Positions 1 through 58,217 of a stretch of DNA of 64,000 bases are shown here, in pieces. Position 1 is the stretch's first letter; the number at the start of each line of letters is the position of its first letter. The notes beneath the pieces are model-generated. The model was not told where the DNA came from and did no database searches. It saw nothing but the letters and a program-made list of their open reading frames with translations. The position numbers and the translations under genes were made by a program. Origin of the DNA: Thecamonas trahens ATCC 50062 (lineage: Eukaryota; Protista; Apusomonadida); the NCBI RefSeq assembly GCF_000142905.1, contig NW_013657641.1, positions 130,907 through 194,906 of the forward strand. The letters are read 5' to 3'.

Positions 1-1771
1 CTGCGTGTCATGGACTTGATGGCCTGGCGCGTCTTCTGGAACGACGTTATGATGTAGTGCGCGAGGACGCACTCGATCCTGGTCACTAGCATCGTCGCGT
101 TTCCGGCGCTGAGGGCTTTGGCCATGTCATCGTGAAGTTTCTCCACCACGAGAACGGCCCAATCGGCGTCAGAGACCTCAGCATTGAGGAACGCAGCATC
201 GGCTTCTTTTTGGCCGTCGTGCGCTTGCCATTGAGCGCGAGCATGTTGCGTCGAGCATCACAAAGCTGGATGGACGTCTGCCTCCGGCCGCACTCAAAGT
301 TGTGGAGGCTCATGATGCCGATCAAGTACGAAATGGCCGGACGCATGGCGTCGCCCACGATGCGGCTGGCAGCAACCGTGAGCATCTCCGTGACATACTT
401 TTGGTACACTTTGGGCCGCGTGAAGAACTCATTGAGCCACTTCCGCTGCTGGATCATAGCGTTGTAAGTCGCCATGTCGAGCTGGCCAAAGCCCTTATGC
501 TTCAAACCCGCCATCGTGTGATCGTACAGCACAAGTGCAGTGTTCGGCATGACCATGGCCTTGTCCGCAAGAGCCTGGCGGTACGCCACGACGTCGGCGG
601 CATAGGCCGTCGTTGTGATGGCATCGTCCGTGACCTTATCGCGGATGTGGTGGACAAACTGATCGAGCGCCTGGCGCTCGATCGCCTCACCTGGCGCGCT
701 TCCCATCGCGTCAAAGTAGTTGACAAAGACCGGCGCGCAGAACGGGTCCTTCGAGTGCGCCATGAGCATGTTCACCACTTTATCGATGCTGGCCTCGCTT
801 GCCCCGCGCTTCGAGGCGAGGATTACCACATCGACGTCCTTCACCGCGCTCGCCGCCATGTTGTCGTCGGCTGCAGTCATAAATCCGGGAATGTCGACGA
901 CGTGCACTTTGGGGCCAGTCGCCCACGGCCCAAACACAAAGATCCGCTTCTCTGCGTCTTGCCCATCGGGCGCCCCGTATTCGGCCGACCACTCAACTAG
1001 CACCTTCGGCAGCAAGTAGTACTCAGCGCGCATCACATCATGCGAATCGAGCAGCGTGTTGCCGTCCCAGCACTCGAGTCGAAAGTTGTACCCCTCGCGG
1101 TACTTGAGGACCGTGACGAGCTTGGAGACCGAAGTTGCGCCTGCGCCCGCATTTAGCGGCCACTTGCCCACTTGCCCCGTCCCAAGCTTGTACAGCTCTT
1201 CCAGAGTCTGGTCTTCGCCTTCGAGCGCGGCGATGATGTCGCTGACTTCATATTCCTCGACCTTGTACTTCTCCACCTTGGCAAGAAGTGGAAGCGGCGA
1301 CACGAGCTCGTTCACGAGGGTCGTCTTACCCAGCCCCGCCTCACCAACAACCGCGATTGTCACCGTCACCGCATCATACTTGTCAGCATTCTTGTGGTAC
1401 TCGCTCTTGAGCTTGTTAAACTTGCTGGTCTCCTTGTCGCCAAGCGGTCCTAAGGCCTCCTCCTCCTTGGCCACCAACCTGTCGCGCGCGCGAAACGCAT
1501 CTGACACCTTTGGCATCACAGACTTGTTCTTCTTCGCAGAGCTTGGCCCAGCGCCGACTGCTTCGGATCCCCACACCCGCTTCCGCCGGCACTTGCGCGC
1601 GGACCGCCGACTTTGCGACGTTGTTGCCGTCGTCGTGGTCGACCCGCGCGGTGGCTCCCAGTCGTCGTCGTTGCTCAGGCCTACCAGCATGTGTGAGTGT
1701 GAGGGTGCACGGTGGGAGGAAGGGGAAGGGGAGAGAAGGGGACAGAGAAACGCACGCATATGGGTTGGCAT
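1..1771 (-). CDS. Dynamin-like P-loop GTPase (Dynamin_N/SLIP-GC-like); runs off the left edge of the window
   Basis: G1 motif VVGEAGLGKTT, G3 motif VVDIPG and a degenerate G4 (NYFD), followed by a helical C-terminal part. Probable in-frame intron 1681-1755 (GTGCGT...ACTCAC...TAG). After a frameshift at the A-run near 207-211 the protein continues KEADAAFLNAEVSDADWAVLVVEKLHDDMAKAL... to position 1. Confidence 0.65.
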
Positions 1772-2246
1772 GCTTTCCGGACTGCAAGTCGAGTGTGCGT
1801 GGCTACGATGACCGTTGTGTTCCTTGTAGAGTCGACTGATGTTAATGCTCCAGTGGCTAAAGGGTACACAAAACGTCGCACCCGACGTTCCACTTTTTTT
1901 TCTGCGAATACGGCGCGACCAGCCTAGGCCCCCTACCTCCCCCTATCCCCCCCCCATCTACACCTGTGCATGCAGGCGCCAAGTACGTTGTGGGTCAATC
2001 CCCCCCCCCCCCCCCCCCCCCATGGACTGCTGCAACATCTTGGGCATTGGAAAAAGAAGCATGCCATCCGATTGCCCAACGATTCCGTCGGTGTCACCGA
2101 ACACGCTCACCGGTCTTCCATCGAGTCGCACTCGGCAGACGAACCGGCGTCGAGACGACGGCAGACCTGACCCCCTCCCCCCCCTTGTTCGGACAAGCTC
2201 CAACGGGCGTTGTCTGCGGAGGAGAAGGACAAAATTCGGCAACAAG

Positions 2247-5101
2247 ATGGAGGAGATGCTCAAGATGCTCCAGGCGGCGTATGGAACCAAGTTGAGAGGT
2301 GCTACGGAGAGGAAGTCGCTGCTGCGTAACGTGGCTGGAGGCGAGGTTGGCCAGGTGGTGGCCAACCGGGTGGGACTGCACGCAAGCGGCTTTTTCGGCG
2401 AACACAAGACACATCATTATCACACACTCGCGCCCGAGGCCTTGGCCCTTCTTGCGCCGGGCGAACATGTGACCTTGCTCATGTGCTGTAATTGCCACGC
2501 CTTTGCTCGCTTCCGAATCGTGCCCTCGCCCTCGCCCGATCCATGTCCGCATCCTGCACATCACTACCACTACGCCGAGATGGACGAGGTGGCAGACGGC
2601 GAGTGGTCGACGGGCGCGGTGCCCGACCTGGGTGCTGCATGCTGCGGATGTTCACGGTCTGTCGATGTGGTTGTCTCGCGCCCGGTCGTGCCGCGCGAGG
2701 TGCTCAAGGCTGTGCGGATGGAAGCGGCCGGACACAGCGAGCTGGTCGACACTGCCTACAACACACTCGGCATGTACATGTCCAAGCTTGCGTCGGGCGA
2801 CGGCAAGGGCAAGCGCATCAACTCACAAAACAAGGGCTACCTCCGCCGGCTCGGTGCTCTCCCGTCGACCAGCGACGTCCTCGCTGCCGTCGGCTTTGTC
2901 CTTGCCGCCGACGGCTTTTGGGATCCGCCAGACCCGGACGACCCAGATGTGCTCTACACGCTCACCATGGCGCGAGTGGAGATGGCGTTTGAGGCCTCGC
3001 ACACACTCTCGGTGGCCGAGATGACGGCCGGCCGGCTCGCACTTGATCCAACCGATGCCACCGGCCTCATCCGCGACGCGCTCTGTGGCGACAAGTCGCG
3101 GCTCCTGCACGCCCGCGGGAAGGAAGCCAGCTTTTTGCAGACCATGCGGCCGCTCGCGGCTTCGTTTGTTGCCATCGGGCTCGCCACATCGGCGTCCGAC
3201 GAGGCTATTGTTTGGGCGGCGCAGCTCGCCATTGACGAGGCCCGCGAGCGAACGCTCGACGTGCTGGATGCGATCAAGACGCTCCAGGCGGCACGCAACT
3301 CGCCAGCCCTCACCGACAACTATCGCCGCCTGCTGCGCGAGAACGGGAGCGCCATCCAAGAGCTGACTGGGCTGGGCGAGCTCGGACTGGAGTTCAGCGC
3401 GAGCGACGACCACGTGGTGGCCACGTACTACAGCAAGCGCGAAAAGGCACCGCACCTTGCACACCACCTCAAAAAGGCAGCTACAATGGTGGCACGCGGA
3501 CGGCCCGAGTCAGCCACGCTGAGTAACCTGGTCGAGACGCTGGATCTACCATCGCCGACGGCGCGGCGCAGCTCGCACACGGCATCGGCCGAGATGACCG
3601 AGGAGGAGCAGGTCCAAGCCGCGATTCTCGAGTCGCAGCGGGCGAGCGCCTTCCTGCGGTCGCCGGGCCCGGAACCCTCCTCGCCTCTACCGTCGCCGTC
3701 GTCGCACCTGGAGCGGGCGGCGTTTGCACTGCGGCTGGAGAGTCGCGCGGGGCTCGGCCTCCCATGTGGCTTGCTCAACATCGGGCAGACATGCTACTTT
3801 AACTCGCTCATCCAGGCCCTGTTTGCTTTTCAACCGTTCCGACTGGCCATCCTCGCTGCACCTGCGCCTGGCTGCACCCCCAGCGACGAACAGAGCGGAA
3901 GCGAGCACGTGGCGGCATTTGTGGCTGCATTACAGGAGCTGTTTGCTTACATGGCACTCGGCAAGGCCAAGACGTACAACTCATCCAAGCTCATGGCCGC
4001 GCTCCGGCACGAGTCGGGTGCGCCGGTCAGGGTCGGCCTCCAGGAGGACGTCGCCGAGTACATCAACGTATTCCTCGAGCAGGCGAAGGCCGCGTTTGCG
4101 AGTGCAGATGCCGAGGCGCCCAACCCGGTGACAGAGCTCTTCTACGGCGAGCTTGCCCAGGTACTGGCCTACTCTCAGACAGACGAGGCGGGGCCGGTCC
4201 CGCAGCCAGCCACCTCGGTGCCGTTCAACCGGCTCATCCTCGACGTTGACGCTGGATCGATGCATGCCGCGCTCGATGCGTACACGGCACCGACGCAAGT
4301 ATTTTTACCCCCCAGAACGCAGACGCGCAAGTGGCAGCAACCAAGACGACCCGGCTGGCGTCGGCGCCGCCGGCACTCATCCTTCAGGTCTCACGTGTCG
4401 TTTTCTCGCCGGCCACTCAGGCCGGGATCAAGATCGACGACCCATTCGAGTTTCCCGACAAGCTGTTCCTTGACCGGTACCTCGCGGAGAATGCAGAGAG
4501 GGTGGCTGAACTGGCCGAGCACGACGCTTTGCTTGCGGCGCGCATCGACGAGCTGGCGCACGAGCTGGTCCCTGGCACCGAGTTTGACGCACTCTCAGCG
4601 TCGATGGCGCTCCTGAAGAGCCATTCACCGCCCGGCGCGGTCGCAGCTGCCGAAACGCTCTCGCAGCTCCGCAGCAGCCTGGAGGCACGCAACAGGCTGA
4701 TCGCAGAGCAGACTGCAGCGATCAAGGCCGAGCGCGAAGCGCTGTTCTCCGAGCTCGACAAGACAGCATACGTCCTGCACGCAGTGCTTGTGCACGACGG
4801 CTACGCCTCGTCGGGTCACTACTATGCTTACGTGCGCCAAAACCCAGACGGCTCGACCTGGTTCCGACTCGACGACGCCACAGTCTCGATGACAACCGCG
4901 GCCGAGGTGTGGAAGCACGCGACTGGCGGGCACAAGCAGGCTTCTGGCTACTGCTTTATGTACGTCAAGGCCGAGGCGGCCGCAGCCGCGAGTGTAGTCT
5001 CGGATCCTGTCATGGCCGAGCTTCCCGAGCGGGCCGCCGCCGCGGCGAGGCACCGCAACACCGTCGACGCGAGCAACACGCGACTGTTCCCGCAGAGCTA
5101 A
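2247..5101 (+). CDS. Ubiquitin carboxyl-terminal hydrolase, Ubp2/USP25-28-like (PUB-like + RPT repeats + UIM + USP)
   Basis: Cys box GLLNIGQTCYFNSLIQ, QEDVAE, His box YVLHAVLVHDGYASSGHYYAYV and WFRLDD; UIM MTEEEQVQAAILES. ORFs 1839-4616 and 4331-5101 join by a frameshift at the T5/C6 run 4302-4313. The true N-terminus is uncertain (possible exon starting at 1970 with a GTACGT donor at 1983). Confidence 0.88.
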
Positions 5102-5123
5102 ACACCACCTCTGGTCCCTCTTT

Positions 5124-5867: not shown

Positions 5868-5870
<3 letters not shown>
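5124..5870 (-). CDS. Hypothetical protein (248 aa) with an acidic low-complexity insert
   Basis: ATG directly follows a (CA)n tract; composition is protein-like and helical; the stop converges with the USP gene. No recognisable domain. Confidence 0.6.

Positions 5871-5934
<64 letters not shown>
5871..5934. repeat. (GT)32 microsatellite
   Basis: Perfect dinucleotide run abutting the ATG at 5870. Confidence 0.97.
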
Positions 5935-5936
<2 letters not shown>

Positions 5937-6107
5937 TGGGGTGGTGGTGAGTGGTGAGGGGGGAGGGGGAAGCGGGAGGACGGGTCAGGGGTCGGTTGAC
6001 AGGCGGGTCGGTGCGGCCAGCCAGGGGGGGGGGGTGACGGCAACACAAAGGAGACGGGGGGACTGGCGGATTTAAATCCACGCACAGGAGACGGCAGACA
6101 ACGCAAA

Positions 6108-9100: not shown

Positions 9101-10241
9101 GGCGAGCGTAGACAAGGCCAATCTTGGCGTGGGTCTTAAAGTGCGAATCTTCCAGACCGACGAGGGCGGCGACCATGCCCGGGCCAACCACGCATTTGAA
9201 CTTACTGCGCTTCTTAAAGAGGCCCGACGGATCATAGGTGGCAAGCACGTAGCGTAGGTCTTTCTTGAACGTCTTGAACCCGTCGGGCGCATGGAGGACA
9301 AACGGCTGGGTCTCGGTCCGCGACCACACAATTGCGCGAATGTCGCAGTTGGCCTTGCCGCCGGCGCTAGAGCGCATGACCGAGACCACGTGGACGCCCA
9401 GCTTGGAGCCGAGATCGGCGATAAAGTTAGCGTGTGGTGCGTCGAGAAAGTACTTGCGGTACCAGCCGAGCAGGGCCTTGGGGTTCTCCTCGACCACGTT
9501 GTAAGCCGTGCACTGAAAGTCTGAGTCGGACGCCGGGGGCAGCGGCGCCTGAACACGCCAGCCCTTGGCTGGAGCAACAACGTTCGCCGGCGGAACCGGC
9601 GTCGAGGCGGTCGACAGCTTGCGCCGCGGAGTCGTGACGATTGACATGCCCTCATCGCTTGTCCGCGGCGTGTGTGGAAGGCCACGCATGGCAACCCTGA
9701 GGATGGCGATCCAGCGGGCGGCGTCGGCTTTGGTGGCGGCTGCAGCAACAATCTCAGCCTCAGACTCGACAAAGTGGGCGATGGTGCCTCCGGGAGCTTC
9801 GGACGCCTCGTCGCACTCGATGCTCGCGTTGGCGAGGGCCAAACGAAAGGCACAGTCCTTGTGTTTGGTCTTTCCACCCTGCGGCCGGCCGACGATGGCG
9901 GTCACGCTGTAGTCTGGCATGTGGACGAGTATGTCGCTGCCGATATCTGAGCTCTTTGTGGGCGCCAGCCTCAGAATGGAGCCTCTGAGAAAGGCATCAC
10001 ACTTTTTCCTGTTGGACGAGATGCGTTGGATGGGTGAGTCGAGTTTGGGTGATGATGATGGGGGTGAGTGGTGATGATAGTGGGTGGTGATGATGGTGGT
10101 GGTGGGTGGTGAGTGTGAGTGGTGATGATGGCGATTGTTGCGGTGGGCTATCCCCTCCCCCTTCTTCCCCTCTCCCCTGCTTCCTTACCATGTGGTGAAG
10201 AGGCCACTGGTCTTGACAAAGAGCGTTCCCGAGGCCTGCAT
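6108..10241 (-). CDS. PH + Rap/Ran-GAP + CNH domain protein (GARNL3-like) with a Ser/Gly-rich tail
   Basis: RapGAP motifs [24 protein letters not shown] and QRKRHIGND; CNH-like region ([13 protein letters not shown]). Exon 1 (10241-10189, [18 protein letters not shown]) splices through intron 10009-10188 to [12 protein letters not shown]..., completing a PH domain that ends in RWIAILR. Confidence 0.85.
10009..10188 (-). other. Spliceosomal intron (phase 2) in the PH-RapGAP gene
   Basis: GTAAGG donor, ACTCAC at 10034-10039, CAG acceptor; splicing restores the Trp codon and the PH-domain frame. Confidence 0.85.
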
Positions 10242-12117: not shown

Positions 12118-12244
12118 CTGTACGCCAACATGCGTGGTAACGTGAGTTAGGGGAGAGACATGGGTGGTGGTGATGGTGGTGGCTATTGGGGGGGGGGGGG
12201 GGAGGGGGGGGGGGTACGGACGTACGTAGGTTGGGTTTGGGTTT

Positions 12245-12344
12245 NNNNNNNNNNNNNNNNNNNNNNNNNNNNNNNNNNNNNNNNNNNNNNNNNNNNNNNN
12301 NNNNNNNNNNNNNNNNNNNNNNNNNNNNNNNNNNNNNNNNNNNN
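12245..12344. other. Assembly gap (100 N)
   Basis: N run next to poly-G and poly-C tracts. Confidence 1.
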
Positions 12345-12422
12345 CCCCCCCCCTCCCCCCTCCCTCCCCCCCCCACCGTCACCGTTACGGCCACGGCCAC
12401 GACCACGGCCACACGACTCGAC

Positions 12423-14040: not shown

Positions 14041-16359
14041 ATGCAGGGGCGTATCAATCTTCAGTATGTGTCATGTGCATGTGTGGAAGTCAGCAGGAAG
14101 GGGGGAGGGGAGAAGGGGAGGAGGGGGAGGGGGTCACCTCTTGGCGCGTGACTGACAGAGCCATTGGTCTGGCATGGGCACACGGACACGGGGGGGGGGG
14201 CGCTCTGGATGCGGTTGTGACTGTGTGTGTGACTGTGTGTGTGTGTGTGACTGTAACTGTGTGTGTGTGTGTGTGTGTGTGTGACTGTGTGTGTGCGTGT
14301 GTGTGCACTGCTGTCGTCGTTGTTGTGGTGTGGCTGTCTGCCTGTCTCTCGTGGCTGTGTGTGGGCATGGTTATGACATCAACATCTGCATGTGCTGCTC
14401 GCCATGTCTCTTCGCAATCGCTATGGCCTCCTCCTCACCATCGCTGCTATCTTCCCGTGCCACACCCTCGTCTCTCCACCCTGCCAGAGATGAGGTCGAT
14501 CGCGTCCTCGGTGGTGGCCCGCTCGGCATGAATGTCGACCAGGCCAAGAGCATCTGCCTCCGAGAGGGCCTCACCGTCTCGCCCGTCCGGTCGCTGGTGT
14601 GGATGCTCGCGCTCGGCGTCCTCGACCCGGCGCAGACTGACAAGTGGCCGAACCAGGCTCGGGCCTGGCGCAAGAGCTACGCTCGCAAGAAGCGCAAGTT
14701 GCTGGTCAATCCAAACAAGGCCAAGTCCAAGACGTCCGACAACCCACTCGCCGACGACAAGGACTCGCTGTGGACCGTCTACTTTGCCAACGAAGAGCTG
14801 CGCGAGGAGATCAAGCGCGATCTGACCCGTACGTACCCAGAGATGGAGTTCTTCCACTCGGACCGCATCCAAGGCCTGCTCCTCGATGCGCTCTTTGTGT
14901 ACGCCAAGACCTACCCGGATCCGTCGTACCGCCAGGGCATGCACGAGCTCCTCGCCCCGCTTGTCTACGTCCTCGCCCACAACCGCGACCGCGACGCCGT
15001 CACCGTCCCCGACTGGCTCGACCCGATCTACGCCACCTCGGACGCCGCTCTCGAGGCCGACGCCTACCAGCTCTTCCACATCATCATGGACACTGCTCGC
15101 CCGTGGTTTGCCGTCACCAATGCCCCGCGCGGCACTATTCCGCCGCCTTCGCCCATTGTCCTCAAGTGCCAGAACCTACAGGATGGCATGCTCAAGCGCG
15201 TCGACCGCGAGCTGTACGACCACCTCGTCGACGTCGGCGTCGAGCCGCAGCTCTACGCCCTCCGCTGGGCCCGCCTTCTCCTCGGCCGCGAGTTCCACCT
15301 CGACGACCTCGTCATCGTCTGGGACGGCCTCTTTGCTCATTCGCCCGACCTTGCCCTACTCGACCACATCTGCGTCGCTATGCTCGTCTACCTCCGCGAC
15401 CAGCTCCTCGAGTCCGACTACGTCTACACCCTCCGCCGTCTCATGAAGTTCCCTCCGGTCGAAGACGTTCGCTGCTTTGTCGAGCAAGGCCTCGCTCTCG
15501 CCACCTCCAAGACCCCGCTCCGCTCGCGCTCAAAGGCCGAGATCGATGCTGCTGCTGCTGCTGCTGCCACCGCCCGTCGCGACGCAGACCGCGCCGCGGA
15601 CCCGCTCTCTGGCCGCTCCCACGCCCGCGGCGGCGCCTCCACTTTTGCCAAGTCCATCATCGCCACCGCCCACGGCGGTGCCTCGCCGGCACCTGTCATC
15701 GGCGCGTCGTCCTCGTCGCCGCGCCGCCGCCGCCGCCGCAACGGCAACTCGTCGTCCTCGCCGGCCCCAAACACCGACAACGACGCCCTGCAGCGCGTCT
15801 CGGATCACGTCTCTGACCTCCTCGCAACCAACCACCAGCTCGGCACAAAACTCACCGATCTTGTGGCCGTCCTCCAAGGCGAGGTCCACACCAAGGAGCC
15901 GCCCTCGCGCGAGACCCTCTACATGGCCATTGCAGGCCTGAAACAGATCAAGGATGTCCTTCTCGGCAACCTGCCCTATTCGCCCGACGCCCCGCTCGAC
16001 ATTGTCGTCCCGCCTGCCCGCCACGACATCAACTACACGGAGCCCGATGACGTCGACGCCGCCGACGTCGACATCGAGCCAGCCCCTTCCGAGCCCGCTC
16101 CTTCCGACCCCGCCGCTCCTTCCGAGCCCGCCGCTCCTTCCGAGCCCGCCACCTCTGAGCCCGACACCGCCCCACCGCTACCGCCGCCAGTCCTGGTCTC
16201 GCTACGCCCGCTTCCAAACCGACGTCCGACATCGACGCTGCCTCGGTACTGCAGGATCTCATCGGCGATGTCTCGTCGCCAATCGGCTCCAAGCTCTCGG
16301 TCTTTGGCGACGTCGACGACGAGTTTGGCGACCCAGACTCGCTCTTTGACAATTTGTAG
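14041..16359 (+). CDS. TBC1D5: TBC-domain RabGAP, TBC1D5-like
   Basis: RSLVWMLALGVL, DNPL..W..YF, IKRDLTRT, YRQGMHELLAP, LRWARLLLGREF and LMKFPPVED. Exon 1 MQGRINLQ; intron 14064-14487 (GTATGT...CAG). A frameshift at the C-run near 16170 leads to ...DDEFGDPDSLFDNL* with TAG at 16357-16359. Confidence 0.85.
14217..14305. repeat. Imperfect (GT)n/GTGACT microsatellite inside the TBC1D5 intron
   Basis: Seen directly in the sequence. Confidence 0.9.
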
Positions 16360-16384
16360 CTCACTGACCATCATCTGCAGCTCT

Positions 16385-20217: not shown

Positions 20218-20254
20218 ACCAAGTCGAGTGGGTGCTCGAGACGAAAATTTACGG

Positions 20255-28236: not shown

Positions 28237-29904
28237 ATGAACTCGGTCCGCACTCTCGTGGTGCTTGCTCTGGCCTGCCTGCTGCTGGCCAGCGTGGCAG
28301 ACGCCGTCGCTTCGGCCGGTTCGTGTTCTTCCGAACGCCGCTGCTCTGATGACTCCGACTGCGATACGAGTCGCAGTGACAGATGCTGCAACGGTACGTA
28401 GCCGTGCTTGCGGTGAGCAACGGCTGGTCGGCGTTGCGATCAGGCGGCTTGCCGCCACGAAGAACACACGCCCAGCCCTCCCCCAGGCGTACCCCCTCCC
28501 CCTCCGCGCCCGCTCCCTCCCCCTCCGCGCCCGCTCCCCCCCCTCCGTTCTTCCCGCCACCGCAGCACCTTGCGCGCCAGCTCCTGTTCTCGCTCGGTGT
28601 TCTGCGGCCTTTTTCTGATGCTTGGCAAAAGTTGCCGGCCGCGTGGGAGCGCCGTCGCAGCCGTCGCAACCTTGCCGGCTCTTTGCCATGCCGGTGCCCG
28701 CCATGGACGAGCCCACTCACAGCAGTTTCAATGCAACACGGGCGGTGATGGGACAGGCCGGTGTGTGGCGGAAGATCAGTTCGACCTCAACCTTGGCTCG
28801 CTCTGCGATGACAACGGCGATGATTGCCGCGGAAAGTGCCGGTCGTCGCTTGCGTGCAGGTCCCAGCGGTGCGAGCGGTGGCGGGGCTTGGCTGGGCCCG
28901 GGTGCATCTGCGACAATTCGTTGACCAGCGGGTGCAGCAACCCGTACACGTACTGCGACTTTATGGCAAACAGGACGGTTGTGGAGAACCGATGCGTGTG
29001 GAACAATCTCCCGCCTGGAGCACCGTGCGATACAAATGCCCAGTGCCGGGGCAACTGTGAGAACAACGTGTGCGTGACCACGTCGACGTCCGGTAGCTCG
29101 TGTGCGTCGGCCTTTGACGGTACCTGCCCCAACTCCCTCGCGTGTGTGGTGGAAGAGGCGCCACCATCAGTCGCCCGGCAGTGCCTCTCGCGGCGCCCGG
29201 TCAATGGCTACTGCCGCGACCCCAGCGACTGCATCTCGGGTGTGTGCGATACCGACTCCAACTTGTGCATTGCCGCGCTGCAGCTCGAAGGCGGCGCCAA
29301 CTGCACCGACAACTACGCGTGCAAGTCGGGGCTCTGTGCAGTGGGCACCCTCGGGTACAGGACCTGCATCGACCGGCCGTACTCGGGAGGCCAGGGCTCG
29401 CCGTGTCCGTTTGGCCACACGCAGTGCCAGATGGGCTACAAGTGCGTCGGCTCACCGACCGTTGCCCGTTGCATGAACGTCCGCGGCTTGCAGTGCGTGT
29501 CAAGCACCATTTGCGGTCCTAACGCAGAGTGCAAGTGCACCGGCGGAACCCACTACGCGTGCCAGGCAGCGGACAAGCCCTCGCTCAACTGCCTCACGGA
29601 GCGCGTTGAGTACCGCAAGTTCACTGGCTCTATCTTCGCGTCGCTCGTTCGCCCGTGGCACCTCTACCCGACCGATGTCGCCGAGGCCGCCGCCAAGCTC
29701 CTTTGCTGTGAGTACCGCCGCGGGTCGTTCAACAACAACGAGGTGAAGAACAGGTACCTCCGCGGCGACGGCCAGGTTCAGCCCGGCGCTCGCCTCAACT
29801 GCCGCGTCGACCCGCCGACGTGGGAGGAGCGCAAGACTGGCGACTACCCCGAGCGCTGCAGCCTGACCAGCGAGGTCGCGTTTGACAACATCTGGCTTTT
29901 GTGA
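28237..29904 (+). CDS. Secreted cysteine-rich protein, paralog of 10847-12117
   Basis: Signal peptide MNSVRTLVVLALACLLLASVADA. Intron 28394-28756 (GTACGT...ACTCAC...CAG, phase 1) gives ...RCCNGRCVAED. Cys spacing is collinear with the paralog. Confidence 0.85.
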
Positions 29905-33057: not shown

Positions 33058-33393
33058 NNNNNNNNNNNNNNNNNNNNNNNNNNNNNNNNNNNNNNNNNNN
33101 NNNNNNNNNNNNNNNNNNNNNNNNNNNNNNNNNNNNNNNNNNNNNNNNNNNNNNNNNNNNNNNNNNNNNNNNNNNNNNNNNNNNNNNNNNNNNNNNNNNN
33201 NNNNNNNNNNNNNNNNNNNNNNNNNNNNNNNNNNNNNNNNNNNNNNNNNNNNNNNNNNNNNNNNNNNNNNNNNNNNNNNNNNNNNNNNNNNNNNNNNNNN
33301 NNNNNNNNNNNNNNNNNNNNNNNNNNNNNNNNNNNNNNNNNNNNNNNNNNNNNNNNNNNNNNNNNNNNNNNNNNNNNNNNNNNNNNNNNNNNN
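33058..33393. other. Assembly gap (336 N) flanked by poly-G
   Basis: N run seen directly. Confidence 1.
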
Positions 33394-36086: not shown

Positions 36087-39000
36087 TTAGTTGGAGCCAC
36101 GCGGCTCCATGGTGAGCGAGAGCTCGTAGGCGACGTTCTCCTCGGGGATCTCGGCCTGAGCGCGGGCCATGCAGCGCTCGAGGTACTCCTGGTGCGGGTG
36201 GTCGGGCTCGAGCGAGTAGCCCATCTGCTGGTAGCGCTGGATCTCCTGCAGGACGTTGGCGTAGTAGCGGCGCTTGACAAAGTTGAGCAGGCCATCGATG
36301 GTGTCCGAGTTACCGTCCTCGATAAAGGTCAGATCCGTGAGGTACATGCCGAGGTAGGGGATGCACGGCGGGTTGGCCATATGGATCGAGTTACGCATCT
36401 TCTTGTAGTTGCCCGACGACGAGAGCACGTCCTTGAGCTTCTCGTACAGCTCGATGGTCTTCGAGTCGACGCGCGCCCAAGCGTTCTTGAGGCGGTAGAC
36501 AGCGGACGACTGGAGGCCGGCGATGACCTCCATGCACCCGTTAAAGTTGTTGAGGGCGCGGAGCTCCTTGGCGAGCTTGATCATCTTCTTCATGATCTTG
36601 GCGCGCTCCGAGTGCTTGCCGGCCGGCGCACCCTGCAGGATCTCCCACTGGACCCAGTTGGAAGTCTCGTTAAAGCGGCGGACGAGCTTGAGGATGTTGG
36701 GCGAGTCGCGCTCCTTGTTCTTCTTGGACCAAGCGAGGCCAAAGCACTCGCGCGGCTCGATGTTCTTGTAGATGGCAGCCTCGATGCGGGTGATGACCCG
36801 GGCCATGGCCTTGCAGTCTGCCGACTTTGCAAAGGTCGAGAGGCGGTCCTTGGGCCGGACGGGCGGGACCGACTCGAGGTCCATGTTGATCGTCCGCTGC
36901 TCCTCGGCCTCCTGCAGCTTGCGGAGGAGAGCCTTCTTGAGCGACTTGGACGGTCGCTCCATGCCGGTCGCCGGCATGGTGTTCTCGACAAAGTCCATGA
37001 CCGTGTCGACCAGCAGCTGGTCCGACCGAAAGTCGTAAAAGTAGTCGTTGATCCACCCACGGAGAACGTTGAAGACCCGGAGGCGGATCGGGATCTGCTT
37101 CTTTGACTTGAACTCTTTGAGCTCCTCTGGCGAGAGGCCCTCGCGCGGCGTGATGCAGTAGCGCTGAATGATGAGCTCAAGAAGATCAAGCGGCGTGGTG
37201 AACGACCGGTACGTGAGCATGAACGCCTGCACGTACTCGGTGTCGGGGAACTTTTCGTACGTCAGCCGCTCGACGAGCTTCTCGATCGTCGCCGCCTTGA
37301 TCTGCGGGTAGCGCGAGGCGTTGTTCGCGTCGTCGTCGTGGACAAACTTGATGTCGCTGGTGTCGTCGCCGTCCTTGTACGTTCGCTCCGACTGTGGGAC
37401 CGTGTTCTTGGCGTCGACCTGCTTCTCGGCCTCCTCCTTGATCCGCTTCTGCAGGTCCTCGGGCGCGTGCTCGCGCTTGAGCGTATGGTACGTGTTCTTG
37501 AGCCGCTCCTTCTTAGATGAGTCCTTCTCCTTGGCCTCCGAGAGCATGGAGAGCGATGAGAGCCGCTTCTCGAGCCGGCCAAGCGTGTCCTTGCGCCGCG
37601 ACTCGCGCGCCAGGCGCTTGCGCTCCGCCGAGTCGAGCGAAGACGGGCCGGCGTCGTCAGTTGTCGACTCGCCGCCGCCGCCGGCTGTAGCCGTCCCGGC
37701 CGAGCCCGACATCGACCCGCCGTCATTGCGCATCAACTCGGCTGCAATGTTGTCCAGGTCCGACTCAACGCCGTTGTCCGACGTCTCCTCGGCCTCCAGC
37801 CGCTCCAGCCGCTCCACCAGCCGCTCGTTCTCGTCGAGCGACTCCTGCAGCGCGTACCGCAGCTCGTCGTTCTGGCGATCCCACTCCTCCACCTTTTTGA
37901 GCTCGGCGTTGAGCTCCTCCACCTGCAGAATGAGGTCTGACCGCTCCATCTGGATTTCCAGCACCTCCTTCCGCGTCTTGTCGGACTTTTTGGCCCGCTC
38001 CTCCGACCGCCGGTTGAGCTGCCGGATCTGCATCTGCAGGCCGGTGACCTCGGCAATGAGGTTCGCCTTCTCGCTCTCGTGGACAGGAACCGACTCGTCG
38101 AGCCGCGTCGTCTCGGCCTTGATGAGCTGGATGGCCTCGACGAGCTGAGCGTTGGTCTTCTGGTTCGCCGCACACTGCTTGGTGAGCTCGGTTGACTCGG
38201 ACGTCGCTGCAGCCTCGTTGCCTTCGGCCGACGCCTGCGCGTCAGACACCTTGGCCGCAAGAATCTTGTTGAGGTTCGTCAGCTTGGTGATCTTCTGCCG
38301 CAGGTGCTCGTTCTGCTTCATCCACGCCGCCGCATTGCGCTGCGACGCGCGCTCCTCGGCAAGAAACGCCTCGTACTTGGCGTGCGTCGCCTGCATCTCG
38401 TCAAGCATCGCCTTGCTCGCCCGCGACTCGGCCACCTTGGCCCCGTACTCGCCGCGCACAGCCTCGATCTTGACCAGCGTTGTGTCGTTCTCCTTCTTCA
38501 TCCGGTCCAGCTGCTGCTGGAGCTGCTTGTTTTGCGCCAGCCACATCTGCGCGTTCTGCAGCGCCGCGTTCTGCGACGCGTTCTTCTGCGAGAGGTTGAT
38601 CTTCTCGTTCATCAGCATCGCAAGCTGCTGCCGGAGCTGCTGCAGCTCGAGCGGGTTGACCTGCGACTGCTCAAGGTGCTTCAGCCGCCCAGTCAACTCG
38701 TACTTTTCCGTCACAAGCTGCTGCAGCTTGCCCTTGATCTTGGCGTGGATGAGCTTCTTCTCAGACTCGAGCTGCCCGATCCGCTGCCGCAGCTCCTCAG
38801 GCGAGCCCTGCACCATCGCCGCCCGCTGCATCACCACCGGCGGAAGCTGCTTCCGCGCACCCATTGACTTGCGCTGAATCGCCTGCATCACTTTTTCGTT
38901 CTGCTGCTGCAGCTCCTCGGCCTTCTTGAGGAACGCGTTCTTCTGCGAAATGAGCGCCGCCAACTTTTGCTGTTGCCAACCCGCCACACCGCCACCGCCA

Positions 39001-39407
39001 CGCCCACCCATACATGAGTGACACACAGAGCACACAGAAAGAGAGAGAGAGGACACATACACCCATGTACAACAACCTCCCATGTACATCCCCTCTCTCA
39101 CTCCATCTCTCCTTCACACCCTGCCTCGCCTCGCCTGTCCAAGTTGGCAGCCTCTGTTGACGGCAAGGCAGCTTTTGGTTGGAGAACGCCGCCGATCGCT
39201 AGAGCACCCATTTTCCTTGGCCCACCGCTCGGCCTCGACACACCAACCAGGGCCAGACGTGTTTGGCAGGGGGGGGGGACATGTGTCGGGTGGGTGTAAG
39301 GTCTGCTGTGGAGCACGTACCTTGAGTCCGGCTGCAAGGGTGGCCTTCTCCTGAAGGAGGCCGTGGCACGCCTGCTTCAGCTTTGCATTTTCCTCGGCCA
39401 AATTCAT
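36087..39407 (-). CDS. Coiled-coil + RasGEF_N + CDC25 RasGEF
   Basis: IKAATIEKLVERLT, FMLTYRSF, RLRVFNVLRGWI, LNNFNG and PPCIPYLGMYLTDLTFIEDGN. Exon 1 is 39407-39321; intron 38970-39320 (GTACGT...ACTCAT...CAG). Confidence 0.92.
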
Positions 39408-39687: not shown

Positions 39688-40571
39688 CTACGGTACCCGA
39701 TATATAGCGTCGATGCGCTGCTTGGCGCGCTGAAGGTCAGCGTCGTAGGTCGGGAGCGACCATGTGTCGTAGAGGGTGACCAGGTGAGCGGCAACAGTGT
39801 GGACCTCGGCCATGTCGACCATCATCGAGCCGAACCACTCGGCGACAGAGATGGAGTTGCTCGACTCGGCCCGGTTGATGGCGCCAGCCATGTAGATGGC
39901 AGCCAGGGCGATGAGGTACGGCGGAAAGTAGAGAAAGACTGCGGTGCAGTACGAGTCGTTGACAATGTACCATGCCGTCTCCAGGAGCTCGTCAGCGAGT
40001 CCTGCGTCGGCGACGTAGTCCTTGAGGGCGGTGTACGGATGAAAAACAACCAGTGAGTACTCGAGCGTGGCAAGCAGCGAGATCTCGGTCGTCGCCACGT
40101 CCTCGGCCGTGACCGTGACCCTGGGGAACGACGACTTGAGGATCTCGGTCACCTGCTTGACCAGCGACGCGAGCTTCTGCGGGCACTCGTCGACCTTGCA
40201 CGCCACAAACACCGCCGCGGCGAGCATGGTAAACGGCGAGACGGTCTCGAGCGTGTGCCGCGTGTAGAACCGCTTAAAGTACACAATGGCCGTAGCGATG
40301 ACGACCTGCGGCAGATGCAGCCGCTTGCCGAGCTCCTGGATCTCTGTCCCCTCCCTCCCTCTTTGCAGTGAGTCTGCCGCCATTGGTGAATGTGGACAGT
40401 GTGGATGGTGTGGTGGCTTTAGTACGCCATCTGCGTACTCTGCGGAAAGTAGATGCCCAGCAGGGTGGCGACGGTGGCGTCGAGCGAGTCGCCCACCCCA
40501 AGGTCAGCCTCGCTGGCCGTCTCGAGCAGCCATACGTCGCGCTGAGAGGATGCCCAGAAGTTACCCGCCAT
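39688..40571 (-). CDS. CCNC: Cyclin C
   Basis: N-terminus MAGNFWASSQ; QVVIATAIVYFKRFY, ACKVDECP, LVVFHPY and AWYIVNDSY. Intron 40344-40438 (GTACGC...ACTCAC...CAG). Confidence 0.95.
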
Positions 40572-40815: not shown

Positions 40816-43312
40816 TTACTCGGACATCGAAGCCGAGCCCGAGTCCGAGTCGGAGAGATCCGAGTCCGAGTCGGATGGGTCGGACGAGTCGGACGAGTCC
40901 GAGTCGGAGCCGAGGAGGTCGGTGTCGTCATTGCCCTCGATGTAAAGGGTGCGTGGGCGGGCACGGACCGAGGTGCGGCCGGGTGCAGCGTCGTCGGCGG
41001 AGACCTGCGAGAGGACGAGGTCAAGGCGGCCGTTAAGCTTCATCAGCTTGTCGTAGACGGCCAGGCGCTCCTCAAAGGTCTGGTAGAGCGGGGTGAGCAT
41101 GGCGGAGAGGCCGGGAACCGAGAGGAGGAAGGCAGTGTGGGTGACAAGAATGGCTCGGATCCAGGGAACGAGGCGGGTACCGCGGGCCGGGCGCGAGCGC
41201 AGCTTGTCGGTGAGAATCTTGAGGAGGGCGACAATGCGGGCAGTCGGCAACTGGCGGACGGTGGCCATGATGGTGCCATGGGTGGACATGCCGAGGCAGT
41301 ACTCAAGCAGCTGGTTGTCGCCCGAGTGCAGGGCCTGGACCAGCATGCGCTTGAGTGACTCGCCGCGCGGGACGCCGACGGTACCATCGTCCGAGGCCGG
41401 CGATGCCGAGCCATCGCCCGACGCGCGGGATCGGCGGCCGTTCTTCTGGCGCCCGCCCGACGAGCCGTTGATGGCCTTGAGCCGCTCTGCAAATGAGAGG
41501 CCGCCGAGGTTCTTGTTCTCCTCGCCGTCGTCCTCGCCGTCCGAGAGCGAGTCAAAGCCACCGGCGGCCAAGGACATGGCCATCGGCGCCTCGCCCGCCC
41601 GCGGCGCCATGGCGTCAGCAGCCGACAGCACCTTGGCATTGGTGCCCTTGGCCTTGGACGGCACGCCCACGGCGCTGGCGCCTGCCGACGTGCCCGGACC
41701 GCCGAACGGGTGCTGGCTCGCCGCCGCAGGCGCAGCAATGGTGACCGACTCGAGCACGCTGCCGTCGGTGCCCGCGGCCTTGATCGCCGTGAACGACGGG
41801 TTCTTGGTCGGCCCGTGCATGGCAAGGAAGGCGTGCGCGGTAGTGGGCCGGAGCGCGCGAATGCCGCGCCCGACAAACCCGTTGTCGTCGGTCGGCTCCT
41901 CGGCCACAAGGCAGGCCGGCGCCCGCGGCTTGATGCCGCGCGCTGCAGCCTTGCGCGACTTCTTCTTCTTGCCGCCAGCGTCGACGGTGGCCATGACGTC
42001 GCTCCAGATGGCAGCCTCGCCCGACGCGGTAAAGGCGGCAACGTGGACCGCTCCGGGCTCGGACGCCGACTTGCGGCTCTTCTTGGACGACTTACCCGAG
42101 CTCGGCGCATCGGTGGCGTAGGTGACGAGGCCGAGCGGCTGCGACTCGGTGACGAGGATGCGCGCGGCGTCCGGCGAGAACACCGTGTCGCGCGACGTCG
42201 ACGACAGGTCGTACACGTTGATGAACCGGTCATGGAGGGCGGCCGAGATAAGGATGGCGCCGTCGGCCGAAAAGGCGAGCGACGAGACGAGCGAAGCGTG
42301 GCCCGTCAGCGTGGCCACACACGTCACGTTGTCCAGATCAGACACGTCGAGGACGCAGATCGAGTTGGCAGCAACCGCAAGTCGCGAGCCGCTCTCCGAC
42401 GCCGCCAGAGCAGAGATGGTGTGGAAGGTGGCGGCCGAGAAGGCGCCGAGGATGGTGCCATCAGCCACAATAACCGGCGTCGCATCGGACGTCAGCGTCT
42501 TCCACGACCAGAACAGCACCTGCCCGTCAGATCCGGCCGAGAACAGGCCGTCCGGTCGGGCCACCAGCGCACGCAGCGCCGCAGAGTGCCCGCCACGGCT
42601 CCCAGCCCGCGAGATGATCTTCTCCGTCGCCACGTCCCACACCAGCAGCGTGCCCTTGCGCGTTCCGACCGCAAGCACCGCCCGCGTCTCCTCACCGCCC
42701 TCTCCCTCACTCTCCTTTGACTTGCTTCCTCCACGCTTCCGCTTGCTCGTCTTCTACAAGCCATGCCCATGTAACCCACCGCCGACACCGTCGCTCTCCG
42801 TGAGTCGGTGGGATGCCCCGCTGGATGGGGGGGCCTGCGGCACCGGCCCCACACCCGGCACTCGACAGGGTCCTACCGCCACACACACGAGCCCCATGCC
42901 CCCACGCGCATTCATGCATATGCCCCATAATACCCGCATGTCCTCTCTGGCTTTCCCTTTGATAGCTACCTGCACTCTGCCTATAGCCTGTGCCGCAGTC
43001 GCGGCCACAGTCACCACTGCCGTCACCGGCAGGTCATCCTCGGAGGATGGCCCGAGACCAGGGAGGGGGGGGGGGGGGGGGGAGCTAGAGGCGTACCTTG
43101 GGACCAAGGCCAAAGCTAGCCGGAACATCGAGCCAGGTCAAGCATGTGTAGTTGGTGGAAAGATGGTCTGCGTCGGTGAGAACGTGCAGCAGCTCGCCGG
43201 ACCGGGTGTCCCACACCCGGATCCGGGAGTCGGTAGAGGTGGTGGCAAACGCCGTTCCCTCCCGATTGAACGACATGATTGCAGACGAGTGTGACCCGAT
43301 TTGGCCACCCAT
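40816..43312 (-). CDS. WDR43: WDR43/Utp5, U3 snoRNP t-UTP subunit
   Basis: WD40 repeats (DSRIRVWDT, YTCLTW, LTGHASLV) plus a Utp12 domain (LVQALHSGDNQLLE...WIRAILVTH...KLNGRLDLV) and an acidic tail. Intron 42754-43096. Confidence 0.92.
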
Positions 43313-45398: not shown

Positions 45399-46913
45399 TC
45401 AGTTGGCGCCGAGGGCCGGGAAGGCCTTGTCGTCGTTGACGTTGGGGAGGCGCGAGCCGCCGCGACGGTTGTTGTTGTTGTTGCCGCCACGGCCACCGCG
45501 GCCACCGCGGCCACCGCGGCCACCGCGGCCGCCGCGGCCACCGCGGCGCTCGCCGGAGAAGGCCTTGTCGACCACGCGAACGTTGAGGAGCTCGTTGGCG
45601 TTGCCCTTGGCAGCGCGGCCACCATCGCGGGCGGAGAAGTTCTGCTGCACCTTTTTGCCCTTGGTCTTGGTGGTGAGGCGCTTGTACTGGCCCCACTCCT
45701 TCTTCTCCGAGCCCTCGTTGGCGCGGCGGGTCGGGCGCGCGGCGGCGACGCGGATCGCAGCCTGCTGGGCCTCGTACTCCTCGAGGGTCATGCCCTCCTC
45801 CTCGTCCGACTCCTCGGCAGCAGGCTCGCCGTTGTTGGCGTAGTCAGCAGCAGCCACGTCGGCGCCCTCATCGGCCACCGACGACGCGGGCTTGCCCTCA
45901 ACGTCCGGGATGTCGCCCCAGTTGTGGGCACCCGAGGTACCGCCCTTGCGCGCGCCCGAGCGCGACGACTGGTTGGCGTACGACTTGCCGGTCGCGTGGT
46001 GGTCCTTGGCGCGACCACGGCCCGACTTCTTGGCGTTGCCGCCCGACTTCTTGGCAGCTGCCACACCCCAAAACCATCCATCCTGTGAGTCTCTCCCTCC
46101 ATTGCGAGTCTTCTCTGTGCGCCTTGTGACTAGCAACTATCCTCGCCCATCGCCCTCTCCATCGCCAGCGCCTCGGCCTGCCATCGCCGACCAGGCCACC
46201 CGCAAGCCCCGCCCGCTCGACGCAGACAAAAATAATGACCGCGGCTTGGCCTGGCCCCGGCCGACGAGCACGGCCAGTGCGGACTAAAGGCAGGCAGGCC
46301 AGATTGCATCTGAAGAACGGCAGATGGGTTGATGTAGCAGATATCCAGTACTACCTGCAAGGGTGCCAGCAGTGTGGTAACCAGCTCTGCACAGCAGGCG
46401 AGCATGCGGGCCAGCAGCGACCCACCGACGGGGAGCAGCGACAGAACCAACAATCCGAAAATGTCTCACAGAGCAGAGCAGGTCGCGCCGAGGCCGAGAC
46501 ACCGGGCAAAGGAGGAGACGGGGGAAGGTAGAGTGGGGGGCAGAGGGGAAGCGAGCAGAGAGCAGGGGGGGATGACAGCACGTAGGCTCCGTGGTGGCAG
46601 CAAGAACTGGGCCAGGAGAGGCTACGCAAGCAGGGGAGAGGCAAAGGAAGCGCCCAAAAGCGGCAATGATCGGTGGCAGAGGGAAAGAGGTAGCCAGGGG
46701 GGGGGGGGGGGGGGGGGGGGGCGGGCGATTGGTGATGATGGACGTACCCTTGTTGCCAAAGTTGGGCTTCTTGAGCGGATCGGCAGCAACAACAGGCTTG
46801 GAGGCCTTCTTGTTGGCAGCCTTCGGCTTGCTCACCGGCGAAGCGGGCGAAGCGGGCGCATCGTCGTCCTCCATGTTGAGGGCGGCGAACGGGTTGTTGA
46901 TCAGCGACGACAT
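45399..46913 (-). CDS. SERBP1: SERBP1/HABP4/Stm1-family RGG RNA-binding protein
   Basis: NPFAAL N-terminus, KGGTSGAHNWG, MTLEEY, RRANEG, RGG repeats and PNVNDDKAFPALG. Intron 46058-46747. Confidence 0.92.
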
Positions 46914-48815: not shown

Positions 48816-48862
48816 CAGGCCACCCGCCACCTCTGCACATTGAACCCTGGCTAGTTTACGGA

Positions 48863-53017: not shown

Positions 53018-53149
53018 CTCTCCTCGCCACCCTACTAGGCTGCAGTCAAGTGTGCGGGTGCGAAGCCCCCCCCCTTCCCCTCGCCCTTCCCTCCCCCCCT
53101 CCCCGTGCGACCTGATCACCGCCTCCCCTCCCTCCACCTGACGCACACC

Positions 53150-54076: not shown

Positions 54077-54187
54077 CACACCCTTCGCCATCCACCTCCC
54101 CCTCCCCCTCCCCCCCTCCCCAATCCCAGACCACCCATCACACCAGCCCTGCCTTTATCCGCGTTCGGCCTAACACTACTCGCCACA

Positions 54188-56068: not shown

Positions 56069-56101
56069 AAAACTGCTTCACATGCCGCGCCGCTGCTTCC
56101 C

Positions 56102-58217
56102 TCATGCCAGCGGCTTGACTCGCTTGGCTAGCGGCTCGGTAGAGGCGAGGCCGTCGGTCCGCTTTCGCTTCTTCTTGGCACCGCTGCTCGTCATTGGAAT
56201 GCTTGCGCGCTTGGCGACGTCGGCCTCGAATCGTGCCTTGGCCTTTGTCAGCTTAGCGAGCAAGTGATCGACAGCCGAAATTGCCGGCTTGGACACGGCG
56301 TAGCCTGTGCGCAGGGCAGCGAGGCGGTCCTCGAGCCCACCCATGGCCTGCATGATGCGGTCAAGCTTGGGCCACGCCTTGGGCTGCAGCGAGTTAGCCG
56401 ACGCGTTCCAAAAGTGCCGCAGCAGCTCGGTGACTGCGGCATCGAGCGGAACAATGCGGTCGACAAAGCCGGTTGGCATTTGCTGCATCCGAAGGTGGGA
56501 GTCGGCCTCGGACGACTGGCGGACACGCGAGGCGGCCATGACTCCGTCGAGCACGGCGTCGGCGTCAGGCACGGTCCGGACACCGGCTGGGGCTGCCGCC
56601 ACCTGCTTGCTGAACAGCGAGCCGCGAATGTATGCCCCCGCGGTGCAGGAGCATCTCCCGGTCCAGCGCCTGCTGACTGGCCAGTCGCAGCAGACGCGCC
56701 GGTGCTAAAGTAAGCCGAGGTGTCGATGATCTCCAGTGGAATGGTCTCCGGCTCGGGCTCGGCCTCGAGCTCACGGATGCGGGCGGCCTCGGCCATGAGC
56801 GACTTGGAGACTGTGAGCGGGACCACATCCGAGTCCTCGAGCACAATCATCGAGTGGCGGTTGACGCGGCGGACAAGAGACTTGGACTCACGGACCTTGC
56901 GTGGCTTGGTCGACTTTGTGCGGCCGACGACAGCTGCGCGGGCCGGCGCCGACGACCGCGCCTGCGAGGCGGTGTGTGGGTCGAGGCTGCCCGCCACGGT
57001 TCCGTAGCCGTATAACTCCGAGACGGCCGAGTCGTCGCGCAGGGCATTGAGCTGCAGCGAGCGCTTTTGGAGCTCGGGCTGGGTTCGAGCCAGGACGGCA
57101 GCAGAGGCCGACGCAGTCTCGACCGACGGATCGGTCAGCCGGCGGAAGCGGACGTTGTGAGTGTCGATCTTGTCGATGATACCGGCCCGGTTGGCGTTGT
57201 TCTGGTGGAGGTAGTAGTGGTTAAAGTACTTTGTCCAGAACGCGACCTTGTCCATCTTGGCCGGGACCAGTTCCTTGTAGGCTAGGTGGACGTGCGGGTT
57301 CTCGAGGAAAATGTGATGGATGACCTCGGGTGTGATCGAGAACTGGATGTGAGTCGAGTTCTGGGCCTTGGGCCGGACGTCGGCGAGGAGCTCCGTCGAC
57401 ATGCCGACGTGCTGGCGTTCGGGCGCGAGCCGCTCACGAGCCACAAGCTCTTTGCGCGACTCCCAGAACTCGTCGTCGGTAATGGCGTCCGTGCCCACGA
57501 GCTGGGCGTGGAGCTCGGCGAGGCCCTTGTCCTTGGCGAGGAGGGCGAGCCGGTACTCGGTGTCGCGCGACGAAGCGGCCATGACCTTGTCGACTGCGCC
57601 CTTGTTGGCTGCATTTTCGCTCCCGCTCGCCGACGCGCCAATAGCCTCGGCTCGCGCTAGCCGCTCCTGCAGCGCGCTGCGCATGTTGGCCAGCTCGAGC
57701 TTGATCCTGTCGCGCTCGGCCTCACGCGCGTCCGACACAAACTCAAAGGTGTACGCTTTGCCTGAAGCGACCTCAATCTTGAGCAAGATAGCTGGCGTCG
57801 ACGGCGTCGAGACAAAGTGTTTGACAATGGTGGGGACCTCGATCTGGATCGGCCTGCTCCGCCGCTGGCCAAAGAAGAGTACCCGCTGCGAGGAGAGGAC
57901 GAGCTCGCCGAGTTCCTTGCCCATGCGCACGGTACTGGTGATAGCAAAGGACGAACAGTAACAGAGGGGGGGCGGGGGGTGAGTACTGGTCGAGGCCATG
58001 CCATGGTTGGCTCATCGAGGCAGAGTGCCTTGCATGGTGGTCTTGACTGGCACGGCTATCCGAGTGGCCGTGAGGGGCTGAGTCGCCTTTGAGCGCGGCA
58101 TGCAGGCAAGGGAGGACGAGGAGGGGGAGGGGAGAAAGGAGAGAGGGGGAGGGGAGGGGAGGGGGGGGCTTACCTGCGGAGGATAACCTCTTCATCCTTC
58201 CGACGCCAGTCTGACAT
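56102..58217 (-). CDS. GTF2H1: TFIIH p62 subunit (Tfb1): PH + BSD domains
   Basis: BSD motifs (LHAQLV...ITDDEFWESR; IFLENPHV...LVP...FWTKYF), NRHSMIVL and ELLRHFW. Intron 57935-58173 (GTAAGC...ACTCAC...CAG); frameshift near 56637. Confidence 0.9.

Follow-up and report, generated by a model that had tools for sequence, protein, structure and literature searches.

Do splice signals and the spliceosome evolve together? The question is open, and lineages with altered donor sites mostly keep a standard U1 small nuclear RNA, Entamoeba being a reported exception. A 64,000-nucleotide (nt) stretch of the Thecamonas trahens genome (positions 130907-194906 of contig NW_013657641.1, or C39), hereafter the window, raises it for the branch site. 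In a preliminary description of the window, the hexamer ACTCAC had been noticed upstream of the 3' AG of most of the introns that could be reconstructed, and had been taken for a near-invariant, non-canonical branch point that might reflect either a compensatory change in U2 or an SF1 protein of altered specificity, i.e. a rewired splicing code. We show here that the motif is a genuine, strand-specific signal of the 3' part of introns; ACTCAY is very probably the branch-site consensus of major-type introns, a one-base (A to C) variant of the ACUAAC box. The analysis drew on the window, on the whole assembly (28.7 Mb, 131 contigs, ~63% GC) and on an independent sample, 200 kb of contig C1 (positions 100001-300000) that had not been seen when the preliminary description was made; the window and the C1 sample together amount to 264 kb.

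The ten sites from which the question arose are all present in the sequence, eight as ACTCAC and two as variants, and their coordinates and strands match:

ACTCAC: 1693, 10034, 12142, 40368, 42800, 46085 and 57979, minus strand; 28715, plus strand.
Variants: ACTCAT at 39014, minus strand; CCTCAC at 14433, plus strand.

All ten lie 13-50 nt (from the branch A to the G of the AG) upstream of an AG that opens a frame of 218-1299 codons. Over the whole window, ACTCAC is found 30 times for 30.9 expected, i.e. without any enrichment, so that any claim about the motif must rest on its position.

Coding frames were delimited with a codon log-odds model, the GC content of third codon positions (GC3) being unable, when used alone as a filter, to separate the sense frame from its shadow frames. 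This gave 100 frames of at least 100 codons in the window and C1, and words were counted in the interval from -100 to +200 around the 5' boundary of each. On the sense strand, ACTCAC occurs 24 times (6.9 expected; 3 antisense) and ACTCAT 15 times (3.2 expected; 0 antisense). For ACTCAY as a whole, the 39 occurrences compare with 10.1 expected and 3 on the antisense strand (Poisson P ~4e-12). The motif is present on the sense strand of 33 of the 100 frame-start regions and on the antisense strand of 3, and the asymmetry is seen in each sample (sense versus antisense, 10 versus 1 in the window and 29 versus 2 in C1). Once low-complexity words are set aside, ACTCAC and ACTCAT are the top words of these regions. 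Other routes to the introns were abandoned. Pairing adjacent coding frames in search of internal introns mostly returned neighbouring genes, because introns here are mostly 5'-proximal; picking first exons by the highest coding score picked up the upstream gene; and hexamer enrichment downstream of all GTACG sites, or upstream of all ACTCAY, was swamped by non-intronic copies.

The same counts show which bases matter. ACTAAC (1 found, 0.8 expected) and ACTGAC (2 found, 3.0 expected) are at background level, as are the one-base neighbours AATCAC, AGTCAC, ACTCAA and ACTCAG; the shorter words CTAAC and CTGAC are found 7 times (3.6 expected) and 25 times (22.3 expected; 22 antisense), respectively. 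Neither a yeast-type ACUAAC box nor the fungal and plant CTRAY site, with its purine before the branch A, therefore describes these introns. CCTCAC is about twofold enriched near frame starts (26 found, 13.2 expected, 7 antisense), as is TCTCAC, and ACTTAC is slightly enriched. When NCTNAY words are summed on the sense strand, the base that precedes the presumed branch A shows an excess of 51.8 for C, 3.6 for A, 7.6 for G and 7.6 for T; since almost all of it falls on C, this base is specifically selected and is not a by-product of GC bias.

"Near-invariant" is nonetheless too strong a term. We used a motif-blind criterion for a missing upstream exon, namely a good coding score before the first ATG of a frame, and among the 20 frames that qualify only 8 have ACTCAY nearby. 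The remaining ones show CCTCAY or TCTCAY runs, ACTTAC, GCTGAC 24 nt before a CAG, or no clear model. The GCTGAC case is a probable intron of ~125 nt on the plus strand of C1 (166330-166460; about 6330-6460 of L017), running from aag/GTATGC to CAG (slashes mark exon-intron boundaries), in which GCTGAC is the sole branch-like word at the right distance.

Direct evidence that the motif belongs to introns is provided by four junctions, one in the window and three outside it, across each of which a Pfam domain runs on; each exon was searched separately, with no joined (spliced) model among the queries. The four introns share one layout, with a GTAYGY donor, then ACTCAC and, 21-47 nt further, the first CAG or TAG:

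L003 (C1:120001-130000), 2821-2933, minus strand: intron of 113 nt; aag/GTATGC, ACTCAC, 28 nt, TAG.
L009: intron of 86 nt; GTACGC, ACTCAC, 21 nt, CAG; Peptidase_C12 continuity.
L006: intron of 136 nt; GTACGC, ACTCAC, 23 nt, CAG; halves of a BRCT domain on either side.
Window, 42754..43096, minus strand: intron of 343 nt; aag/GTACGC, ACTCAC at 42800-42805 (branch A 42801), 47 nt, TAG.

In L003, the first exon (24 residues) corresponds to positions 2-23 of the Biotin_carb_N profile and the second to positions 24-110; in L009, exon 1 ends with WKAVESNPEVFTN and exon 2 begins at position 15 of the Peptidase_C12 profile. The intron at 42754..43096 is the best supported of the window: its flanking exons, searched apart, both match WD40/beta-propeller families, and in the downstream frame the first ATG is preceded by 253 codons that score 104 for coding.

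Signal statistics were drawn from 16 modelled introns. Their donors carry A at +3 (15 of 16), G at +5 (all 16) and Y at +6 (15 of 16), while +4 is C in nine, A in four and T in three; the acceptors are CAG in 12 and TAG in 4. The motif lies inside GT-AG introns of 75-860 nt whose compositions are unrelated, with the branch A 13-63 nt from the AG. Outside the hexamer no base is preferred, and in particular no U is favoured just before it, and the stretch between motif and acceptor is often G-rich rather than pyrimidine-rich. A nearer AG is skipped in two of these introns, a GAG at +11 in L003 and an AAG at +10 in L017 (3133-3228, minus strand), the next TAG or CAG being used; of the two junctions, only that of L003 is confirmed by Pfam. 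The acceptor rule is thus the first YAG, not the first AG, with a preference for YAG over RAG that is weakly significant (22:9 versus 67:67, P 0.045). A donor co-occurrence test was not significant (59% versus 45%, P 0.15).

ACUCAC and ACUCAU both contain CUCAY, which fits yUnAy and offers an A as nucleophile. In the mechanism that we propose, the A at position 5 of ACTCAY would be the branch nucleophile, ACUCAC being the commoner form and ACUCAU the rarer; splicing would then take place at the first CAG or TAG that lies at least ~10 nt downstream, AAG, GAG and AGs that are too close being skipped, with donors of the GTAYGY or GTAAG type and usually no polypyrimidine tract. Such an organization resembles that associated with the strict UACUAAC box of Saccharomyces and other intron-poor lineages, where a constrained hexamer near the 3' splice site likewise goes with a constrained donor and a weak polypyrimidine tract; unlike in Saccharomyces, however, the base before the branch A is C instead of A, and no U is preferred before the hexamer. 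The human branch consensus, by contrast, is degenerate (yUnAy; PMC2367711). ACUCAC fits it, and the standard human U2 tolerates a C opposite pseudouridine 34 (psi34); but whereas n is free in humans, it is almost fixed as C here, and the AC on the 5' side of CU is fixed as well.

How such a site might be read is considered first at the level of SF1, which would be the first factor to recognize the motif. The assembly holds one SF1 orthologue (L047:1174-2478, plus strand; PF16275, 98.8 bits; E 1.4e-41 to human SF1, 7VPX). Its core recognition residues are kept, namely GPRG, an Ile that reads the branch A through its backbone, an Arg that recognizes the C after it, and the KR..QL of QUA2. In an alignment with 146 diverse homologues, however, it has a Leu at the position of Msl5 Val165 and GLD-1 Val222, where the homologues have I (99), V (24), F (15), M (7) or T (1) and never L. 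Two residues further, at the Leu167 position, it has a His, found in 1 of the 146 homologues, 127 of which have Leu; QUA2 also contains rare residues (QLMLLA for QLRELA, GTLT for GTLR).

The first of these positions contacts the very RNA base that differs here. In the 1.8 Å structure of Msl5, the base before the branch A is sandwiched between Val165 and Lys196, with only water-mediated purine-type contacts (PMC4338336). In the solution structure of GLD-1 with CUACUCAUAU, Val222 carries the C, and the fact that A is usually preferred has been ascribed to the greater area over which a purine touches Val222 and Leu226 (PMC4081071). GLD-1 binds UACUCA optimally while Quaking favours UACUAA 5- to 41-fold (PMC2905418), so that this fold is known to vary at exactly this RNA position. 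SF1 has the same STAR (KH-QUA2) fold as GLD-1, and the GLD-1 element UACUCA is nearly identical to the RNA word ACUCA(U); GLD-1, on the other hand, is a translational regulator that has Val at the site and still prefers A (PMC4081071). A Leu, bulkier than the usual Val or Ile, in the floor of the KH pocket would favour the smaller pyrimidine, which is a reasonable inference. We therefore favour an adaptation at the protein level over a change in U2, and give the full scheme, in which SF1 would have adapted and a standard U2 would tolerate the mismatch, an even chance or slightly less.

Two further observations concern the branch-site proteins. A contig of 4055 nt with 3.6x coverage in the ENA assembly ERZ505273 (P0001/L048) matches the SF1 locus with ~99% identity but in another order; its 260-residue product leaves the genome's frame inside QUA2, ending with QQLMLLSSNMCG instead of QQLMLLAQLNGTL, and this departure is likely to be due to an indel or to a chimeric low-coverage contig. 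In addition, T. trahens SF3B1 has been reported to carry an Asp at the position of Asn626 of human SF3B1, which contacts the pre-mRNA (PMC8785561), a further residue of the branch-site machinery that is out of the ordinary.

Of the alternatives, we consider first that ACTCAY could be a genuine 3' intronic element bound by some other factor, branching taking place at a nearby degenerate site. The wide range of motif-to-acceptor distances would suit such an element. These distances are nevertheless like those of branch sites elsewhere; moreover, the motif fits yUnAy and is one position off ACUAAC, and no second motif is shared between ACTCAY and the acceptor in the 16 introns. We regard this explanation as improbable.

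The second alternative is the compensatory U2 of the preliminary description, whose premise is correct: against the standard GUAGUA of U2, ACUCAC forms three base pairs, then sets a C opposite U34 (psi34) next to the bulged A, giving a C.U mismatch, and forms one more base pair beyond the bulge. With GGAGUA (U34 to G), the pairing of ACUCAC on both sides of the bulged A would be perfect, and conservation of the C would simply reflect RNA-RNA pairing. All six positions of the motif are conserved, the C is exactly the base that G34 would pair with, and ACTGAY, which could wobble with the standard U34, is not enriched. The 5' region of a standard U2 was likewise not found in the assembly. The Rfam model RF00004 finds no U2 there at E<=0.001 or at E<=10 (46 of 82 first-look candidates scored). 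Pattern searches of the assembly returned none either, whether with a 29-mer leaving the two key bases free (3 mismatches), with GATCAAGT-N6-TCTGTTCT (2 mismatches) or with the 17-mer GTGTAGTATCTGTTCTT (2 mismatches); these patterns also fit the GGAGUA variant, so that their silence counts against it, and they would miss a U2 divergent downstream of GUAGUA or a gene lying outside the assembly. The sole matches to U2 patterns are at chance level and in non-U2 contexts.

The other spliceosomal RNAs bear on the same point. A U1 candidate (C10:232060-232228, plus strand; L029:1501-1669) scores 52 bits, below the Rfam cut-off of 69.5, and carries the standard ACUUACCU at its 5' end, besides an AUUGCAC loop and an Sm-like AAUUUGU. 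As this 5' end is standard, the unusual +4 C donors are not compensated. The same had been reported for T. trahens in a preprint on lineages with transformed donor sites and a standard or co-evolved U1, which describes the species as intron-poor, with C favoured at +4 and a single U1 candidate whose pairing is standard (bioRxiv 10.1101/2022.06.08.495308). Its passage on Thecamonas covers the donor and U1, and we recovered such a U1. By analogy, an uncompensated U1 leans, indirectly, against a compensatory change in U2. U6, in contrast, is cited in favour of such a change, because its only candidate is itself divergent. The standard U6 37-mer is absent from the assembly with up to 3 mismatches, and the only U6-like sequence there (C7:485429-485533, plus strand; L028:1501-1605; 26 bits, E 0.0026) shows ACAGAGA, a hairpin on its 5' side and a terminal run of U, yet it has GAUUCGC in place of the invariant GAUUAGC, which includes the AGC triad. 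A divergent U6, a pseudogene and a chance match are all conceivable. Since this candidate reads CGC at the triad, GGAGUA might belong to a wider divergent U2/U6 core.

A possible read-out of U2 itself came from a genome pattern search. At C44:27568-27591 (plus strand), a box-C-like TGATGA is followed by GCCTCCTG (8 nt) and then by CTACACTTGA, a candidate small nucleolar RNA (snoRNA) guide. Over 12 bp, one of them a G.U pair, it is complementary to standard U2 nt 27-38; an A lies opposite U34, and A30 of U2 falls where the box D' rule predicts. The chance probability of one such extension among 11 matches is ~0.1, and the putative guide is accordingly a weak argument for a standard U2. Searching for CACTTGA followed by CTGA as another snoRNA route gave 15 places, none of them snoRNA-like. 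The probable GCTGAC-type intron of C1 also argues against a U2 with G34. To our knowledge, moreover, GUAGUA is conserved even where branch sites are degenerate, which likewise counts against the change. We consequently hold a GGAGUA U2 to be very improbable; if it did exist, this would be the first case in nature of a U2 evolving together with a branch-site consensus. U2 is probably standard and would tolerate a C.psi mismatch next to the bulged A, as with human CUCAC introns.

Inheritance without selection, in which the introns would descend from a spreading introner-like element carrying ACTCAC, is suggested by a uniform signal in an intron-poor genome but is highly improbable, given that the positions flanking the hexamer show no preference and that intron lengths and compositions are unrelated. 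Finally, chance or a CA-rich background would account for the window-wide count and for the copies that lie in CA-rich repeats (10064-10120), yet it is refuted by the excess and strand bias at frame starts, their recurrence outside the window and the four domain-continuity junctions, and we give it a negligible probability.

Several points weigh against reading ACTCAY as a branch site recognized by an adapted SF1 and a standard U2. The branch nucleotide is assigned solely by analogy with ACUAAC, and the share of introns that use ACTCAY can be given only approximately, as ~60-80% of resolvable cases. The case for SF1 consists of one conservative substitution and a few rare neighbours in an alignment, and GLD-1 binds UACUCA with a Val at the pocket site (PMC2905418, PMC4081071). 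The standard U2 of this reading is argued from priors, from the analogy with U1 and from one candidate snoRNA guide. The interpretation initially offered is partly supported: its premise of a C opposite U34 stands, the changed contact residue lends suggestive support to its SF1 half, and altered specificity, like a rewired splicing code, is for now a conjecture.

We found no published description of the branch motif, the donor shift and the standard U1 being already published. New contributions are the replication with controls on unseen DNA, the junctions proved by domain continuity, the first-YAG acceptor rule, the selection for C, the comparison of the SF1 pocket and a snoRNA that possibly reads out U2. 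The shift in the branch site concerns the one position whose partner lies beside the bulged A, and it is to the sole base that neither pairs nor wobbles with standard U2. This makes T. trahens a natural test case, in which the choice is between a change in U2, for which there would be no precedent, and a consensus set by SF1 recognition, possibly through a single unusual pocket residue. Apusomonad annotation has been flagged for its many 'non-canonical' introns (PMC11347168), and gene prediction there would also gain from the GTAYGY / ACTCAY / first-YAG model.

The window itself is densely filled with long eukaryotic genes (UCH, Rap-GAP/CNH, SacI, TPR, RasGEF, CLP1/NOL9 and homeobox genes among them), with no tRNA or Rfam match. 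Only two of its ten introns, those with motifs at 42800 and 46085, are supported independently of the motif: in both, the good coding score ahead of the first ATG marks the downstream exon as internal. The remaining eight are plausible candidates. Besides the intron at 42754..43096, the window sites were modelled as follows:

46058..46747, minus strand: intron of 690 nt; agg/GTACGT, ACTCAC at 46085-46090, 28 nt, CAG.
28394..28756, plus strand: candidate intron of 363 nt; acg/GTACGT, ACTCAC at 28715-28720, 37 nt, CAG.
57935..58173, minus strand: candidate intron of 239 nt; cag/GTAAGC, ACTCAC at 57979-57984, 45 nt, CAG.
10009..10188, minus strand: candidate intron of 180 nt; atg/GTAAGG, ACTCAC at 10034-10039, 26 nt, CAG.
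12118..12225, minus strand: 3' part of a candidate intron, 108 nt; tac/GTACGT, ACTCAC at 12142-12147, 25 nt, CAG.
1681..1755, minus strand: candidate in-frame intron of 75 nt; tgc/GTGCGT, ACTCAC at 1693-1698, 13 nt, TAG.
40359..40438, minus strand: ambiguous intron; ACTCAC at 40368-40373, donor GTACGC at 40438 or GTAAGT at 40819.
38970..39320, minus strand: candidate intron upstream of the RasGEF gene; ACTCAT at 39014-39019, 45 nt before CAG.
14064..14487, plus strand: candidate intron of 424 nt; tca/GTATGT, variant CCTCAC at 14433-14438, 50 nt before CAG.

For the intron at 46058..46747, exon 1 (46749-46913, minus strand) has 55 codons and scores 43.8 for coding; in the downstream frame, the 115 codons ahead of the first ATG score 61.6, and exon 2 gives a weak HABP4/PAI-RBP1 match. 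The model at 28394..28756, in which AGs at +3 and +6 are passed over, is plausible only: the frame fits a 52-codon first exon from an ATG, but the coding score of that exon (0.8) lends no support and Pfam shows no continuity. The intron at 57935..58173 probably lies in a 5' untranslated region, as an ATG is found 4 codons past the acceptor and the PH domain of TFIIH p62 (profile positions 4-87) begins at residue 6 of the downstream piece; an in-frame ATG at 57999 also permits an intron-free model for this locus.

The candidate at 10009..10188 lies upstream of the Rap-GAP/CNH gene, and its first exon would have only 1 or 17 codons, so that frames cannot prove it. Positions 10040-10180 (minus strand) form a CA-rich CACCAC/ATCATC repeat; ACTCAC occurs at 10034, 10064, 10109 and 10115 in this region, and only the last copy before the CAG is at branch distance. 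At 12118..12225, the donor is 20 nt from an assembly gap (12245-12344), in or beyond which any first exon would lie; long frames across this gap merely read N as X and carry no continuity. An AAACCC-like repeat (12226-12244, minus strand) abuts the gap, between the minus-strand gene, with its exon from 12117 down, and a plus-strand frame at 12174-13715. A second gap, at 33058-33393, touches none of the ten sites.

At 1681..1755, the 75 nt are divisible by 3 and the frame is open from the ATG at 1771, so that splicing is neither required nor excluded by the frames. The acceptor candidates for the motif at 40368 are AAG or GAG at +8, +10 and +14 and CAG at +25 and +33, and no pair of a strong donor and a YAG acceptor preserves the single good coding frame. 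The candidate at 38970..39320 has two possible donors, aag/GTACGT at 39320 (351 nt) and ggt/GTATGT at 39060 (91 nt). The candidate at 14064..14487, lastly, contains a (GT)n microsatellite at 14223-14301 (plus strand).

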